Positions 1,285 through 18,931 of a DNA stretch of 18,931 bases are shown here, piece by piece. The translations under genes were made by a program, and so were the position numbers. Position 1 is the stretch's first letter, and the number at the start of each line of letters is the position of its first letter. This DNA is from Fonticula alba ATCC 38817 (Eukaryota; Protista; Nucleariida), in assembly GCA_000388065.2 (NCBI GenBank), contig KB932216.1; one strand, given 5' to 3'. A model generated the notes under the pieces. That model was not told the origin of the DNA and did no database searches. It saw nothing but the letters and a program-made list of their open reading frames with translations.

Positions 1285-1294
1285 NNNNNNNNNN
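1285..1294. other. Assembly gap (10 N), probably a placeholder for a larger missing segment
   Basis: Run of N flanked by (GT)n and C-rich sequence. The 5' exon(s) of GSR are not visible elsewhere. Confidence 0.9.
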
Positions 1295-3863: not shown

Positions 3864-6800
3864 CCGGTCGACTGGTGATAGGTGGGGTTCTGGCGCTGGG
3901 CCACGCGCAACAGGGCCGGGTCCACGCGCGACCGCCAGGGCTCGATGCTGGACCGGAAGGCCGCCGGAGCCAGGAGACCGGCCTGCAGCAGCGAGTCCGC
4001 GGCGATGTCGCTCTCCGGCGGGACAACCGCCGCCCCGCCGCCGGGGCCCGGCTCGAACATCCAGGCCGCATGGACCGCGGCAATCAGCTGCATGCTGGTG
4101 GCCGTGGAGGGCCAGTGCAACTGCCCGGCCACCGACTCCCCGTCACCGGGGCCCGGCAAGTCCGCCAGCGGCCGGGTGATGCCATCCAGCGCCACCGACA
4201 CCGACAGCACGCTGACCAACAGGCGCAGGGCCTCCTGCAGCAGGGCCGGCGGGTAGAGGCGCCCGGTGGTGGCCGCCGGGCCGGCATCCGGCTGGGCCGG
4301 CCCGGCGGCCACCGCGGCCGCCAGGGCCGACGCATCGCTGGCCAGCGAGGCCACCACCCGCGGCACCACCGCCGTCAGGATGTCCTTCGCCAGGCAGAGG
4401 CGCGGGTCGTCGGCCGTGTGCAGGTCGGCCGCCGCGGCCACCGCCAGCGACAGCAGCGTGCGCGAGCACCGCAGGGCGGTCAACTGCGCGCACGACGAGT
4501 AGGCCGGGCTGACGCCAACCTCGGCCAGCCGGCCCACCAGGAAGTCCCACACCTGGCCGGGGGCCGGCATCAGGCCGGCCGCTGCCGACTCGCCAGCCGG
4601 CGACTGTGAAGAGGAGCAAGGAGACGGGCCGCCGGCCGCCGCCGGGGCATCGGACTCGCGCCCCGGGCCGAAGGCCTGCGGCAGGGCCGACACAATCAGG
4701 CTCGAGTAGCGCACCGACGGGGCGATGGCCGAATAGGGCGACGTCAACAGCGCGTGCACCACCAGCAGGGCGATGGACCCCGGCAGATGCTGCGGCTGCT
4801 CCGAAGCCGCGTCCGGCGGGGCGATCGACGATGATGGCCCCGGGTCCGCCGCGGGCTTCGCCGAGGCCGGGTCCTGGCGCAGGAGCTCCAGCAGGGCCAG
4901 GGCCAGCGGCAGCTTCGACCGCTGGCCCTCCTCCGAATCGTCGTCATCCAGCTGCAGGTGGGAGCAGCCGCCGGTGGCGCCGGCCGAGGCCGGGTGGTGG
5001 TGCCCATCGTCCGACCCGGCGCCGGCCCCGGGCCCGGCGGCCGACAGGTCGATGGCCCCGATGCCAGTGCCGGCGCCGGCCGCCGCGCCGCCGGCCCCAC
5101 TCAGGTCGCCATCCTCCGAGCCGCTGCCCGGCGGCTGGTCCGCCGACATCGGCGCCGCCAGCATGGCCGAGCACACCGCCGCAAAGAGCTGCGCAATGGG
5201 CATGGCCCGGACCCCGGGCACGCCGGCCGGCTGCCCGGCGTCCGCATCCGCACGCAGGGCCACACGCAGGAAGCCCGCCAGGGCATGCAAGGCCAGCGGG
5301 GCCACGCGCGTGCTCAACACCGCCACCATCGGCGAGATGCCCGCGGCGAGGGGGGCCGCCGCGCCGGCCGCACCGGGGCCGAGCCCCTCGCCACCGGGGC
5401 CGCCGCCGGCCGCCGGGTCCATGGCCATGGAGGACCCCCCGGCCGGGGGGGCCATCATGGCGCCGGCCCCGGTCGGGGGACCGCCGGCGCCGGCGCCGGC
5501 ACCGGCACCAGCACCAGCACCACCGGCCGCCATGCCGCCACTGGTGGCCCCCACCGCCGCACTGCCCACCGAAGACTGGCCGAAGGTGTGGAAGTAGTGG
5601 TCGGCCGCGGCCAGCACCGGCGACGAGGCGCCGAAGCCCAACTCGCGGGGCAACCGCCGCGGCGCACACCGGATCAACACATCGACCACGATGTGAGCCA
5701 GCGCATGCGCCGGCTGCCGGTACAGGAAGGGGGCCGGGGTCCGGCCGGAGGCCGACCCGCCACCGGTGGCCTCCTCGGCCGCGGCCGCCGGGAACAGCGA
5801 CCCCGGCTGGATGACCGCGCACAGGGCCTGCACCAGGTGGCAGGCAGCCGGCATCACATGCAGCAGGCCTTCCTGCATGGCCCGGCGCAGGGCATGCGAC
5901 AGGGGGAACAGCAGGGCCGGCGGCACCAGCGGCACCGCGGTCTTCAGCCCCGGCCGATGCTCATCCAGCAGCCCCAGGCACCGGGCCACCAGGCGCAAGC
6001 ACACCACCGACAGGGGATTGGCCAGGAGCTCGGCCAGGCCGGCCGCATCGCCGAAAGCCACCGAGAAGGGATCCGCCCGGTGGGCCTGCCCGGCCGTGGA
6101 CCACACGCAGAAGGAGGCCAGCCGGGCCCCGGGAGAGGCCCCGGCCCCGGCCGCCTGGCCGGTGGCCGAACACTGCCCGGCCACCAGCGACGAGATCACC
6201 CCCCCGAAGGAGGAGTCCCCGGCATCCGGGGAGGCCAGCTGCGCCACCCGCCGGACCAGCGAGTCGACCGTCAGCACCAGCAGGGCCGCGGTGTTGGCCG
6301 CGGCGATGCGCTGCTCCGCCTCCGCCGGATGCCCCCCGCCCGGGGGGAGGCCCACATCGGCCGGCACATGCAGCAGGGCATCCAGCAGGGCCGCATCCGG
6401 CAGGGCCAACAGCGCCCGGACCAGCGAATGCCGCACATTCAGGTAGAAGGGCAGCAGCGTCTCGCTGGGCGCGGCGGCCAGGCTGCCACCGGCCGACGCA
6501 CGCCGGCACAAGGCCCGCAGGGCGGCCATCCACTCGCGTGCCAGCTCCACCACATACCCGCCGGCACCATCGGCAATGCCGGCGTGCCGAGCAGCGGTGG
6601 CGGTGGCGACGGTGCCGCCGCTGCCGGCGGTCGGCCCGGCCGAGCGGAAGACCGCGGCCAGGTCGATCGGCGCGCATGCCGGCGCCGGGAGGTCGTCCTC
6701 GCCGAGATGGGCCGCGGCCGCGGCCGCCGCCGCCGCCGCCGCCGGCGCCGCCAGCTGCCGCACGCGCAAAGCCGAGTACATGGTGGCCAGGGCCGCCAGC

Positions 6801-9674: not shown

Positions 9675-12600
9675 ACCCCGGACCCCAGGCCGAAGGCCGT
9701 CGGGTAGTGGTGCAGGTGCCACAGGCAGCCGTGAACCACAAAGCGCTCCAGGGCCCCGAGGGCGCCCTGCAAATTGCGCAGCAGCATGCGCCACTCGACC
9801 GGCGACCGGGCCGAGGTCCCCTGCTGGGTGACCATGGTGAAGGCCTCGATCAGGGGATCCCGCCACCGGGCCATCAGGGCCGGGCCATGCGTGCAATAGG
9901 CACCGATCAGCAGCCAGGCCATGTCGCTGAGGGCCACTTGGGATTCCAGCCACTCCGGCAGGCACTGCCCGAGCGAGGGGTTGGAGCTGACCGCCGACAC
10001 GGCCGCCTGGCGGACCAGCGCCCCGGTGCGCAGAGTGGCGAAGGCCCGGTCGGCGGTCGCCGCCAGCGAGGCATTTGCCTGGGTGGCATCCAGCCAGGCC
10101 GGGCCCAGGACCGCCAGGCCGGAGGCCGCCAGCGACAGGCCGGAGGCCGCCAGCGAGCCGGCCGGCGCCGCGGCCGCCGCCGCGCTCAGTGCCCCGCCGG
10201 CCGGCTCGGCCGCCGGCGTCGAGGTGGAGGACGACATCATTTGCGGGGCCGGCGCCCCGGGCCCGGTGCCGGCCGGCGCCGGCAGGCCAATCCCGGCCGC
10301 CGCCTGCAGGGCCGCCGGCGCGGCCGACGAAAACCCGGCCAACGTCGAAGCCACCAGGTCCGCATCCGACATGGTGGCCAGCGAGGTGAGCCCGGTTTGC
10401 AGGCCGGTCGGCGGGGCACCGCCAGCCCCGAAGGCCGGCCCCGGGGCCGGGGCCGACCCGGTGGCCACACTCCCCAGGGCCGGGCCGCTGGTCGGCAGCA
10501 GGACCTGCGGCGTTTCCGACGCCAGCATGGCCGCCGCCGCCGCGCCCGCACCCCGAACCCACACACTCCGGACCACGGCCCCGCCCGGGGCAAAGGCCGC
10601 CGGCATCAGCTCATGCAGGGGCCGCGCCCGGGCGGCGCCATTGCCACCGGCGCCGGTGGCCGTGGCGGCGCCCGCCGGCGACACCCCGGCCGCGGCCAGC
10701 AGCTCCGGCGGGCTGGACGCATCGACCGCCGAAAAGACCGCCGCCGCCAGCAGGGCCCCGGCGCCGGAGGCCCCGGTCGGGAAGCAGGCCGCGAAGTAGG
10801 CGCGCGAGGCGCCGGCCGCCGCCGCCCGCACCGCGTCCACACTATGGCCATAGCACCGGACCAGCGGCGAGTGCAGCAGGCTGCGCATGCGCTGGTCGAT
10901 GGTCTCCTCGGGGCCGGACCCGGACCCGGACCCGGACCCGGACCCGCCGGCCGCCACGTCGGCCGGGCCGCCGGCCGGGGTGGAGAAGGCCGCCGAGCCG
11001 AGCGACGCGGCCAGGCGCCCGGCATGCGACGCCAGCACCGCCAGCGACACCGCGGCACCGGCATTCTCCGGCGGGCTGTCCACCAGGGCCTCCATCTCGA
11101 GGGACACCACGCGCAGCATGCCGGCCAGGCCGGCCTCGCTGTCCAGGCGCTTGGCAATGCGCGACAGGAGGTAGGCAACGGCCGACCGGGCCACCAGCAC
11201 CTCCGGGTGCTTGAGGGCCGCCTCGGTGGCCGCCACCGACAGGGCCTGCGCCCCGAGCGGGGCATTCAGGCTGGCCGAGGCCAGCGGCGGGGTGCCGGCC
11301 GGGCCGCCGGCTCGCGGCGACAGGGCCCCACCCGACTGCGCGCAGATGGCCGCCCGGTGGTGATCGGCAATCGGCGCCAGCAGCTGCTGGGTGATGTGCG
11401 CCACAAAGGCGTGGAGCTGGTCGCCGCTCAGCAGCGGGTGCGGGGCGGCCCGGCTGTGCGGGCTGCCCAGCAGCTCCAGCACCCGGTCATAGGCATTCAT
11501 GATGCCGATGCGCTGGCCCACCGGGATGTTGGCCCGGGAAAATTGCAATGCCAGCGGGGCGAACAGCGAATTGATCAACCCCAATGACGGGGTGGCCTCG
11601 ATGGAAGCCAACGAGGCGCCGGTGTCGCCGGCCGGCCCGGACCGCCGCATGAGGAACGACCCGAAGGAGGAGGTCAGGGACTTGGCCGGCACCGGGCCCG
11701 TGGCCCCGGGCCCGGGGGCCCCGCCACCCGGGGCCGAAGCCCCGCCAGGCCCGGCCCCACTGCCGGACATCGAAGAGGCACCGGCACCCGGCAGGCTGCC
11801 GGCATAGCCGGCACCGCCATGCGGCTTGACATCATCCCCGGTCTCGGGGTCCAGGGCGACGGAGCCCGGCGTGCCGGCCGGCGAGCCGGCCATGCCGCCC
11901 CCGGCACCGACCCCGGCCCCGGAGGCCACCCCGGAAAAGGCCGGCAAATGCAGCAGCACAAAGGCCAGCGTGTGGGACATGGCCAGCCGGCAGCTGGCAC
12001 TGGCGCTGGCGTCCTCCAGCGACTTGAAGATGATGGCCACCAGCTGCTGCAGCCCGGCCGGGTCGACGAATTGACAGGACACCAGGGCCTCGATCAGGCG
12101 AAGCCCGGCCAGCCGCAGGGCCGGCGTCAGGAGCCGGTTTTGCGGCGGGGTCGACTCGACCGACGCCCGGGCGATCTTGAGCGCGCTGCGCACGGAGCTG
12201 GTGCTGATGCTCACCTGCAGGGTGGCCGGCACCTTGACCGGCGAGCCGGGCCCGGCCACCAGCGCCCGCAGGCCGGCCAGCTGCTCGGACATGCGCGTCT
12301 GCTCCTGGGAGATCCGGTGGTAGGGCGACAGGGCGGTGTTCGGCAGCCCGGAGAAGCAGAGGACCAGGCACTCGAGCAGCTCGACGCGCATGGTGGAAGT
12401 CTGTGCGTGTGGGGGGGGNNNNNNNNNNNNNNNNNNNNNNNNNNNNNNNNNNNNNNNNNNNNNNNNNNNNNNNNNNNNNNNNNNNNNNNNNNNNNNNNNN
12501 NNNNNNNNNNNNNNNNNNNNNNNNNNNNNNNNNNNNNNNNNNNNNNNNNNNNNNNNNNNNNNNNNNNNNNNNNNNNNNNNNNNNNNNNNNNNNNNNNNNN

Positions 12601-13035
12601 NNNNNNNNNNNNNNNNNNNNNNNNNNNNNNNNNNNNNNNNNNNNNNNNNNNNNNNNNNNNNNNNNNNNNNNNNNNNNNNNNNNNNNNNNNNNNNNNNNNN
12701 NNNNNNNNNNNNNNNNNNNNNNNNNNNNNNNNNNNNNNNNNNNNNNNNNNNNNNNNNNNNNNNNNNNNNNNNNNNNNNNNNNNNNNNNNNNNNNNNNNNN
12801 NNNNNNNNNNNNNNNNNNNNNNNNNNNNNNNNNNNNNNNNNNNNNNNNNNNNNNNNNNNNNNNNNNNNNNNNNNNNNNNNNNNNNNNNNNNNNNNNNNNC
12901 TGTGAGGCAGGATTATGATGAGGGTGCGCGCGCAGGGGGGGCCCGATGCCGGCGGCCGGCGGCCAGCCCAGCGGCGGGACCCCCGGCGCCAGGGCAAGGG
13001 GGCGGGGGGGGGGCGGGGGGGCGGGGGGGGGAAGA

Positions 13036-13973: not shown

Positions 13974-14387
13974 NNNNNNNNNNNNNNNNNNNNNNNNNNN
14001 NNNNNNNNNNNNNNNNNNNNNNNNNNNNNNNNNNNNNNNNNNNNNNNNNNNNNNNNNNNNNNNNNNNNNNNNNNNNNNNNNNNNNNNNNNNNNNNNNNNN
14101 NNNNNNNNNNNNNNNNNNNNNNNNNNNNNNNNNNNNNNNNNNNNNNNNNNNNNNNNNNNNNNNNNNNNNNNNNNNNNNNNNNNNNNNNNNNNNNNNNNNN
14201 NNNNNNNNNNNNNNNNNNNNNNNNNNNNNNNNNNNNNNNNNNNNNNNNNNNNNNNNNNNNNNNNNNNNNNNNNNNNNNNNNNNNNNNNNNNNNNNNNNNN
14301 NNNNNNNNNNNNNNNNNNNNNNNNNNNNNNNNNNNNNNNNNNNNNNNNNNNNNNNNNNNNNNNNNNNNNNNNNNNNNNNNNNNNNNN
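13974..14387. other. Assembly gap (414 N) in the HEATR5 5' region
   Basis: Run of N flanked by G runs. Confidence 0.99.
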
Positions 14388-16409: not shown

Positions 16410-17045
16410 NNNNNNNNNNNNNNNNNNNNNNNNNNNNNNNNNNNNNNNNNNNNNNNNNNNNNNNNNNNNNNNNNNNNNNNNNNNNNNNNNNNNNNNNNNN
16501 NNNNNNNNNNNNNNNNNNNNNNNNNNNNNNNNNNNNNNNNNNNNNNNNNNNNNNNNNNNNNNNNNNNNNNNNNNNNNNNNNNNNNNNNNNNNNNNNNNNN
16601 NNNNNNNNNNNNNNNNNNNNNNNNNNNNNNNNNNNNNNNNNNNNNNNNNNNNNNNNNNNNNNNNNNNNNNNNNNNNNNNNNNNNNNNNNNNNNNNNNNNN
16701 NNNNNNNNNNNNNNNNNNNNNNNNNNNNNNNNNNNNNNNNNNNNNNNNNNNNNNNNNNNNNNNNNNNNNNNNNNNNNNNNNNNNNNNNNNNNNNNNNNNN
16801 NNNNNNNNNNNNNNNNNNNNNNNNNNNNNNNNNNNNNNNNNNNNNNNNNNNNNNNNNNNNNNNNNNNNNNNNNNNNNNNNNNNNNNNNNNNNNNNNNNNN
16901 NNNNNNNNNNNNNNNNNNNNNNNNNNNNNNNNNNNNNNNNNNNNNNNNNNNNNNNNNNNNNNNNNNNNNNNNNNNNNNNNNNNNNNNNNNNNNNNNNNNN
17001 NNNNNNNNNNNNNNNNNNNNNNNNNNNNNNNNNNNNNNNNNNNNN
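16410..17045. other. Assembly gap (636 N) in the HEATR5-NAA40 interval
   Basis: Run of N preceded by a T7 run and a poly-C run. Confidence 0.99.
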
Positions 17046-17260: not shown

Positions 17261-17990
17261 GGCGCATCCCTGCCCCACCCCTCATCACTTGGCTCCCAGC
17301 CCGGGACGCGACGCTGCCTCCCCCGCCGCCGACTCGCCGCGCCGAAGGGGCGGAAGGGGGGGCGAACCGGGCCCGGTGTTGTCGGCGCCGTGCGCGCCGC
17401 CCAACGTGTGCCCGGCGCGGCCGGTCGCGCCCGTTGTGGGGGGGCGAGGAGGCATGCCCCCCCCCCTCCCCCCGCAAAAAGGGGGCTGCTCTCCGGGGAC
17501 AGGGGGAACGCGCCGCGAAGGAGAGGGGCCAGGCGCGCCTCCGGGTCCGCTGGCCCCCACGCCTGGCCCGATTGGGGCCGGCCGGGCCCGTCCGCTGGAA
17601 TGCCTGCCGGCCGTCGGTTGGCATGCCATTCCCAGGGCACTGATCACACGAAGCGGTCACGCGAGGCGTACGGGAAATCCGCGCGCCGCGCCCACGGCGG
17701 CGGATTTCCCCGGCCGGTCTCGCGAGCGCCGGCCGCCCCGCGCACCCGCGCACCCGCACGCCCGCACGCCCGCACGCCCGAGTCCCGTTCCCTGTGCGGG
17801 CATGCGCGCGCACGCACACCACAGCCACAGCCGCGCCGGTGCTTTTTCGGGCCGATCGTTGAGGGGGCGGATCGCCCGGCGGTGGCCCAGTCAATCCCCT
17901 TTCCGCCCTCCCCCCCCCCCTACTAAGGGTGCATCGCCCCCCTTCGCTTTTTGCTGTCGCCCTCCTTTCGCGCCGCCCTCCCCGTCACAC

Positions 17991-18931
17991 ATGTTCGCCT
18001 CGTCGCTGTCGCGCTCGGCCGCCGGCCGGTCGGCCGGGCGTGCCTTCCGCTTCGCTTCGCCCCTGGCATCGGGCCCGCTGGCTCCGGGCCCGCTGGCTCC
18101 GGGCCCGCTGGCAGTCCTGCCCCCCGGGCTGGCGCTCCCCGAGCCGGTCGCCGCCATCCCCGCCGCCCCCACCGCCCCACACCGCCTGTTCTCGCTGACC
18201 GCCAGTGCAGCCTTCAGCGCTCAATCCGCCCTGGATCCGGTCGCTCCCCCGCCGTCGCCCGCCCGCCGCCCGAGCAGCAACGTGAAGTCCCTCTTTTCCG
18301 CCTGCGCCGACATCATGGCCAAGAAGAAGTCCACCGTGCAGGAGCGCTTTGCCCGCGTGCAGCGCCAGTCCAAAGCCCAATGGACGCACATCGTGAGCCA
18401 GGTGCGACGGTGCCTCCCCCGCCCGCCCGCCCGCCCGCCCGCCCGCCCGCCCGCTCACCTCCCTGACGGCCCTGCCACGGGGCTGCCCCGCTGCGACCCC
18501 CCTCCCCGCAGGCCAACAGCTCGCCGGAGCTCGAGAGTGCGTCTGCCCTTCTGCCCTTGCCCGCTCCCATGTGCCCCTGCCTTCGCCCCGGCTGACCTGA
18601 TGTGGCCCACGCGCTGTGGCAGAGGTCGCCGGCGCCGGAGCCCACCTGCGCTTTGTGAATGCCATCACCCCGGACTTGATGGACGCCTGCTACAATGTCA
18701 TCATGACCAACATGGCTCCCATGTGCGCTCGACCGCTCCTGGCCCCCCCCCCCCCGCCGGCGCCCGTCTGGCGGCCACTCCTGGCCCTTCTGCACGCCGC
18801 TCACCGTTGGCCATCCTCGGCGGGGCGCGGAACAGGCAGGCAGGTCCATCAGGGCCAGGGGCAGCGGAGGGCCGCCCGGCTCTCCTGCTCTCGGGCCACG
18901 GAGCGCCCGGCCCAGGGCCCGGTGGTGTCAC
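17991..18931 (+). CDS. NAA40: N-alpha-acetyltransferase 40 (NatD/Nat4)-like, 3'-partial; exons 17991 (or 18315)-18401, 18512-18536, 18623-18722, continuing beyond the window
   Basis: The spliced product MAKKKSTVQERFARVQRQSKAQWTHIVSQ-ANSSPELEK-VAGAGAHLRFVNAITPDLMDACYNVIMTNMAP(M) parallels the NAA40 N-terminus as I recall it (basic start, AAN, then [21 protein letters not shown]). Donors GTGCGA 18402, GTGCGT 18537 and GTGCGC 18723. CAG acceptors end at 18511 and 18622. The GNAT core is not in the window. Missing from the ORF track, probably because the unspliced frame reaches the window end without a stop. Confidence 0.75.
   Translation, partial: MFASSLSRSAAGRSAGRAFRFASPLASGPLAPGPLAPGPLAVLPPGLALPEPVAAIPAAPTAPHRLFSLTASAAFSAQSALDPVAPPPSPARRPSSNVKSLFSACADIMAKKKSTVQERFARVQRQSKAQWTHIVSQVRRCLPRPPARPPARPPAHLPDGPATGLPRCDPPPRRPTARRSSRVRLPFCPCPLPCAPAFAPADLMWPTRCGRGRRRRSPPALCECHHPGLDGRLLQCHHDQHGSHVRSTAPGPPPPAGARLAATPGPSARRSPLAILGGARNRQAGPSGPGAAEGRPALLLSGHGAPGPGPGGV
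18071..18112 (+). repeat. 15-bp tandem repeat GGGCCCGCTGGCTCC x2.8, encoding (GPLAP)n in the NAA40 N-terminal extension frame
   Basis: Two exact copies plus a 12-nt partial copy. The period is a multiple of 3. Confidence 0.9.
18421..18452 (+). repeat. (GCCC)8 tetranucleotide repeat in NAA40 intron 1
   Basis: Directly visible. Confidence 0.9.

Follow-up and report, generated by a model that had tools for sequence, protein, structure and literature searches.

The stretch of DNA analysed here (hereafter the window; 18,931 nucleotides, G000:C16:94865-113795) comes from Fonticula alba, whose 31.3-Mb genome has about 74% GC and contains spliceosomal introns, and its 3' end carries the first exons of a gene for NAA40, the N-terminal acetyltransferase also called NatD. 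Both the organism and the gene, H696_05976, were named by a protein search. GenBank already gives H696_05976 two products, one of 403 aa that comprises an N-terminal extension and the core (KCV67578.1 / XP_009498020.1 / UniProt A0A058Z0Y6) and one of 295 aa that is labelled "variant" (KCV67579.1), with both products falling within one 90% cluster; hence, neither the long open reading frame nor the two-product model of this gene is new. Four runs of N interrupt the window (1285-1294, 12419-12899, 13974-14387 and 16410-17045), and the last of these, 636 N in length, stops 945 nt 5' of ATG 17991, so that neither the gene's upstream neighbour nor its promoter region in full can be read. The final ~130 bases of the window (18803-18931), which adjoin an N gap, are a dispersed repeat at a contig end: 18803-18897 recurs at C17:4175-4269 with 99% identity, and 18898-18931 recurs at C8:995376-995409 with 100% identity.

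The gene structure described here relies on RNA-type contigs, spliced and drawn from four public runs, which represent two samples of one study from 2012, and every feature of the gene within the window lies on the plus strand. A pyrimidine-rich 5' flank with poly-C (17897-17990), noncoding by codon statistics, is followed by the 108-codon in-frame extension (17991-18314), the translation of which is identical to residues 1-108 of the 403-aa product. The core of exon 1 (18315-18401), placed by spliced contigs, holds the start of the canonical 295-aa NatD (MAKKKSTVQERF...), and is separated by intron 1 (18402-18511, GT..AG; contig joints from 18398/18401 to 18509/18512, ambiguous by the 3 nt CAG) from exon 2 (18512-18536), for which both the spliced contigs and the 295-aa product speak. 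Intron 2 (18537-18622, GT..AG, 86 nt) is spanned by the joint 18536>18623 in all four runs, and exon 3 (18623-18722) is the last exon within the window, since the mRNA resumes beyond it at G000:C16:117463 (L004:3668). The loose ends of the contigs past 18722 read CTATGACAAGTCC..., which is the sequence from L004:3668 on, and the NAA40 mRNA after exon 3 runs on as CTATGACAAG... (L004:3668 = C16:117463); the jump from exon 3 to exon 4 thus passes over a partial peroxiredoxin gene with a run of N on each side (2261 N before it, 10 N after it). Three further exons (L004:3668-3925, 4055-4242 and 4341-4570) complete a 295-aa protein identical to GenBank's 295-aa product, and the RNA contig depth over the downstream exons is 4-8. 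Two simple repeats lie nearby, a perfect (CCCG)9 microsatellite in intron 1 (18418-18454) and an upstream (CCCGCACG/A)n repeat (17737-17780). Records of 31-38 nt from the RNA runs, at a depth of ~200, match the upstream repeat but not (CCCG)9, and are probably low-complexity cross-matches.

The partial gene spanned by the exon 3-exon 4 jump encodes a 2-Cys peroxiredoxin (L004:2318-3560, or G000:C16:116113-117355); it lies on the same strand, inside the 3.9-kb 'intron 3' of NAA40, with the 2261-N gap and the 10-N gap as its flanks. The C-terminal 1-cysPrx_C part of this peroxiredoxin is absent from the assembly, in which it matches nothing but another gene, complete and located on C6, and the partial gene is either a nested gene cut by the gap or a contig misplaced in scaffolding. 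Its N-terminal region (L004:2318-3066) has a signal-peptide-like start (MTPKRLITLLALLALSMFMVLPGALSQ), then an Ala run and at least five (G)ECPFAKG repeats before the AhpC-TSA domain, and is coding by codon statistics (+0.23 to +0.26 per codon). C/T-rich tracts recur in this genome within ~100 nt 5' of every start codon examined, preceding the starts of cytosolic HSP70, mtHSP70, a CCT subunit, HSP60, ISU1 and the peroxiredoxin (tract positions: window 17897-17922; upstream of L006, L007, L016, L037 and L041; L004:2262-2317). Most of these tracts contain long poly-C, that of mtHSP70 having shorter C runs only, and C/T-rich tracts are found likewise in introns and beside assembly gaps.

The downstream part of the 403-aa product had been recognised as an NAA40/NatD homologue from the letters alone, and database comparisons bear out this assignment. 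The Pfam GNAT families Acetyltransf_1, Acetyltransf_7 and FR47 score above their curated cut-offs at residues 260-342 of the 403-aa product, the acetyl-CoA binding motif QGRGLGS is found, and the six best PDB sequence matches are all NAA40 chains, from human and S. pombe (E 6e-6 to 1.5e-4), with which the NAA40-specific N-terminal segment NMAPIYDKSNYKWTPASKRQEM (WGW..EKREEM motif) aligns. The Fonticula protein thus shares with canonical NatD/NAA40 (human 4U9V/4U9W, S. pombe 4UA3) the GNAT core, the W-x-W..EKR-EM segment and the QxxGxG acetyl-CoA motif, but its core is longer (295 aa, with insertions) and ~30% identical over the aligned parts, and one of its isoforms carries 108 extra residues. 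Two word-based protein searches returned nothing beyond the gene's own products, and an exhaustive protein search returned 56 distant homologues at 35-49 bits, the best non-self match scoring 49 bits. In most of these distant homologues, residue ~50 of the query is aligned to residue ~45 of the target, and the distant NAA40s begin within ~10 residues of the Met of the short form, which indicates that this Met is the ancestral start. Where the distant NAA40s have longer N-termini, these are rich in K/R and in acidic residues and show no presequence likeness; among fungal NAA40s, N-terminal extensions range from 40 to 150 aa and are variable and non-organellar.

A second NAA40 paralogue was sought in the genome and none was found, so the gene is single-copy. 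A search of the genome with residues 1-108 matched the gene's own locus alone, and an origin of the extension by duplication was rejected on this ground. Among the N-terminal acetyltransferases (NATs), NatD counts as one of those with the narrowest substrate range, which is considered to comprise histones H4 and H2A only. Histone H4 of Fonticula begins MSGRGKGGKG, and thus has the SGRGK N-terminus of the canonical NatD substrate; with this substrate present in the genome, histone acetylation is the predicted activity of Fonticula NAA40. The single copy of the gene, the SGRGK N-terminus of H4 and the start of the homologues near the Met of the short form point to a need for a cytosolic form of the enzyme.

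The first-pass annotation had drawn attention to the extension as an in-frame addition that starts like a mitochondrial presequence, and its reading of the sequence holds in each particular. ATG 17991 shares its frame with ATG 18315, which lies 108 codons further on, and the interval is free of stops in that frame and of ATGs in every frame; 94 of the 108 codons end in G or C (GC by codon position 0.72/0.70/0.87); and the 15-bp tandem repeat (18059-18112, plus strand; TRF: period 15, 3.7 copies, 92% matches) keeps the frame and encodes (GPLAP)n. The initial 24 residues hold 4 Arg, 6 Ser and 6 Ala, the first acidic residue is residue 51, and RLFS stands at residues 65-68. The contexts of the two start codons are likewise as had been described, tcacacATGt at 17991 (C at -3, T at +4) and gacatcATGg at 18315 (A at -3, G at +4). 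The caveat that had been attached, that stop-free runs of this length are not rare at this GC content, proved well placed: the frame is stop-free in 73% of dinucleotide shuffles and the ATG-free gap between the two starts arises in 19% (P=0.19), and therefore neither the open frame nor the ATG gap is informative. Indeed, the frame of the extension is open already from 17115, with additional in-frame ATGs at 17454 and 17802, and all six frames are mostly open in the region. The repeat periods are 15, 12 and 9 within the extension, and 4, 8 and 16 in the flanking noncoding repeats.

To assess coding potential, we used a synonymous-codon model trained on 6689 codons from HSP70 and CCT exons of the Fonticula genome, set against a noncoding model built from ~2.8 kb of introns or, alternatively, from the 945 nt upstream of ATG 17991. 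In frame 0, the extension has an LLR of +19.1 nats under the intron null and +11.4 nats under the upstream null, whereas frames 1 and 2 give -26 and -24 nats. The minus strand gives -60 to -104 nats, which led us to reject the idea that antisense coding causes the periodicity. Dinucleotide shuffles, each scored by the best of its three frames, have a mean of -15.2 (SD 6.2, maximum 11.0), and 0 of 3000 reach +19.1; known noncoding windows have a mean of -45 and a maximum of -5.4, and real coding windows a mean of 32 (SD 9). The onset of the signal coincides with ATG 17991, as the 27-codon windows lying wholly 5' of it are all negative (-0.6 to -17.5) and those from 17964-17991 to 18314 are all positive; at the ATGs 17454 and 17802 the codon LLR is strongly negative, and we therefore rejected both as starts. 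The score per codon is +0.18 in the extension, +0.20 in the NAA40 core and +0.23 to +0.26 in the N-terminus of the peroxiredoxin, which served as a low-complexity coding control. The LLR is still +14.5 with two copies of the tandem repeat collapsed, and the first 27 codons of the extension by themselves give a weak codon signal (+2.4). Since the frame-specific codon bias goes beyond all shuffles and all noncoding windows, the extension behaves as coding sequence that begins at ATG 17991, and translation of 17991-18314 in this frame, at present or in the recent past, is probable. In a genome of 74% GC, open frames and presequence-like composition are nearly weightless, and it is the frame-specific synonymous-codon bias that is informative.

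The likeness of the extension's start to a mitochondrial presequence is also supported, albeit by measures of low specificity. Reading 5' from conserved domains gave us genuine presequences of Fonticula, with those of mtHSP70 (MLSSFSRLARGPTTSALLRRPGAYSTS), ISU1 (MLSRFASLQRAVPLLSAAAPRRFYH) and HSP60 (MYRAAIVSRRLALSASVSSSARASVSVGALATASRTYST) serving as controls. Residues 1-25 of the extension contain 4 R/K, 0 D/E, 6 S/T, 6 Ala and 3 P+G, and their helical hydrophobic moment (muH 0.80) is the highest in the set compared; on each simple measure the N-terminus of the extension falls within or beyond the range of mtHSP70, HSP60 and ISU1, and cytosolic N-termini do not. The simple measures are nevertheless unspecific in this genome, because 7 of 16 ATG-ORFs from noncoding DNA have three or more R/K and lack D/E among their first 25 residues, most of these seven being richer in Pro and Gly. 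The presequence-like segment itself, MFASSLSRSAAGRSAGRAFRFA (17991-18056, plus strand), holds a possible R-2 site, RF/AS (residues 20-23), while R-L-F/S at residues 65-68 (18183-18194, plus strand) is a second candidate processing site, at which cleavage is suggested by motif likeness. Both resemble the RTY/S of HSP60 and the RAF/T of SOD2, with which RLF/S shares the pattern R-x-(F/Y) followed by S/T, although motifs this short have little weight. Given a coding extension, mitochondrial targeting has, on these sequence features, a prospect that is even at best and perhaps slightly worse.

How two proteoforms would arise from this gene is a question on which the RNA contigs bear directly. The first-pass annotation had envisaged a single mRNA carrying both AUGs in a leaky-scanning layout, and in this respect the data point elsewhere. 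The contigs of the four runs begin at 18260, 18290, 18291 and 18326, with neither loose ends nor an upstream joint, and no contig among the RNA-type contigs of these runs lies on 17991-18259, so that a long mRNA was not seen in them. These 5' ends indicate an abundant mRNA that lacks the upstream AUG, and thus favour a separate short mRNA over leaky scanning. Most likely, the abundant mRNA starts inside the extension and encodes the 295-aa NatD alone, matching the annotated "variant"; its 5' UTR (18260-18314, plus strand), as defined by the furthest 5' reach of the contigs, overlaps the end of the extension ORF. The proposed pairing of a weak with a strong AUG stands as regards the two contexts and the ATG-free gap, and fails as regards the presence of both AUGs on the abundant mRNA. 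GC dropout is an unlikely cause of the missing RNA at 18170-18259, where the GC of 0.68-0.73 compares with 0.67-0.75 in exons that are covered at a depth of ~6-7; at 18020-18170, where GC reaches 0.80-0.85, a GC-driven dropout of coverage may have occurred, and a rare long mRNA may be compatible with the contig data.

We favour an explanation based on alternative transcription starts, in which the short form is backed by the contig ends and the GenBank "variant", and a long mRNA is predicted for the annotated 403-aa product. The single-copy H696_05976 would carry a lineage-specific 5' extension of 108 codons, translated from ATG 17991 onward, and would give rise to two N-terminal proteoforms. 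The canonical 295-aa NatD would be made from ATG 18315, off the abundant mRNA with 5' ends at ~18260-18326, and the 403-aa form would be made from a longer mRNA, rarer or condition-specific, that we infer to start 5' of 17991. In this long form, a mitochondrial presequence would be formed by the first 20-70 residues, with putative import and a putative cleavage site, and the Pro/Ala-rich rest of the extension would be a disordered linker. Leaky scanning could make a secondary contribution on the long mRNA, given the poor context of AUG 17991: the base at -3 is a purine in 7/7 other Fonticula start codons examined vs C at ATG 17991, which makes some scanning past this AUG plausible. Taken as a whole (a translated lineage-specific extension, two proteoforms, a long mRNA and a mitochondrial presequence), we place this account a little short of an even chance; it draws on one genome and on homologues that all score 49 bits or less.

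Among the alternatives, the one that fares best accepts that the extension is translated but denies it any targeting role, so that it would be a lineage-specific disordered tail, rich in Ala, Pro, Ser and Arg, and both forms would be cytosolic or nuclear. The codon signal supports translation under this alternative too, such N-termini readily arise in GC-rich genomes, where presequence-like composition is common even in the noncoding ORFs sampled here, the 40-150 aa N-terminal extensions of fungal NAA40s are variable and non-organellar, and the N-terminal proteoforms of human NAA40 differ only in being nuclear vs cytoplasmic (PMC8037211). What speaks against a non-targeting tail, and leads us to regard it as unlikely, is that residues 1-25 agree with real presequences of Fonticula on all simple measures, low Pro+Gly among them, and are accompanied by sites of the R-x-F/S type. 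Less probable again is a single mRNA with both AUGs, on which leaky scanning past 17991 would yield the mitochondrial and nucleo-cytosolic forms. The C at -3, where the seven other starts have a purine, and the lack of an AUG in any frame between the two starts are both in keeping with such a mechanism, but such a lack also arises by chance, in 19% of shuffles, and the contigs of all four runs stop at 18260-18326 although they reach a depth of 4-8 over exons further downstream whose GC is similar. Finally, that the extension is merely the noncoding 5' flank or promoter of a gene starting at 18315, its frame open by chance and the 403-aa model an artefact, would fit the stop-free frame in 73% of shuffles, the six largely open frames, the tandem repeats and the lack of an RNA contig on 17991-18259, but is the least probable reading in view of a codon bias that is unreached by shuffles or known noncoding windows, sets in exactly at the ATG and survives collapse of the repeat (+14.5).

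If the preferred explanation by alternative transcription starts is correct, H696_05976 would join a familiar class of genes. Dual-targeted eukaryotic enzymes can be encoded by one gene with two in-frame AUGs, used through alternative transcription starts or leaky scanning, and the classic cases are yeast tRNA-modifying and tRNA synthetase genes. The Fonticula gene resembles these in being single-copy and in having an upstream AUG that adds a presequence (predicted here) and a downstream AUG that gives the cytosolic/nuclear form, but differs from them in that its long mRNA and its import are predicted here from sequence and annotation. To our knowledge, no N-terminal acetyltransferase has this two-AUG dual-targeting layout. 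Within the NAA40 family, the human enzyme has long and short N-terminal proteoforms that differ in localisation (Jonckheere and Van Damme 2021, PMC8037211) and that are produced via alternative transcripts and/or alternative translation initiation, its extension being a basic, myristoylated stretch of 21 aa that serves as a nuclear/nucleolar signal; in Arabidopsis, Naa40 has a transit sequence predicted by ChloroP (PMC8037211). The human and Fonticula genes are alike in having a pair of proteoforms, predicted in the case of Fonticula, whose N-termini are the sole difference, and in human the N-terminal piece steers localisation. Unlike the human extension, which is itself the conserved basic N-terminus, that of Fonticula has 108 aa, is presequence-like and lies upstream of that N-terminus. 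The locus would thus be a further case of one gene with two N-termini, with an organellar destination as the predicted outcome.

Reviews state that no NAT machinery has been identified in mitochondria (PMC9692967), and our literature search found no paper on mitochondrial NAA40 or on Fonticula NATs. A mitochondrial long isoform of NatD/NAA40, made from the one gene for this enzyme in Fonticula alba, is a plausible prediction from these sequence data, one that we hold tentatively and at rather less than even. If true, it would provide a third localisation for the theme of NAA40 N-terminal proteoforms (PMC8037211). It would also be the first N-terminal acetyltransferase resident in mitochondria, implying mitochondrial, non-histone substrates of NatD, and, in an organism closely related to the fungi, would raise the question of N-terminal acetylation within organelles.
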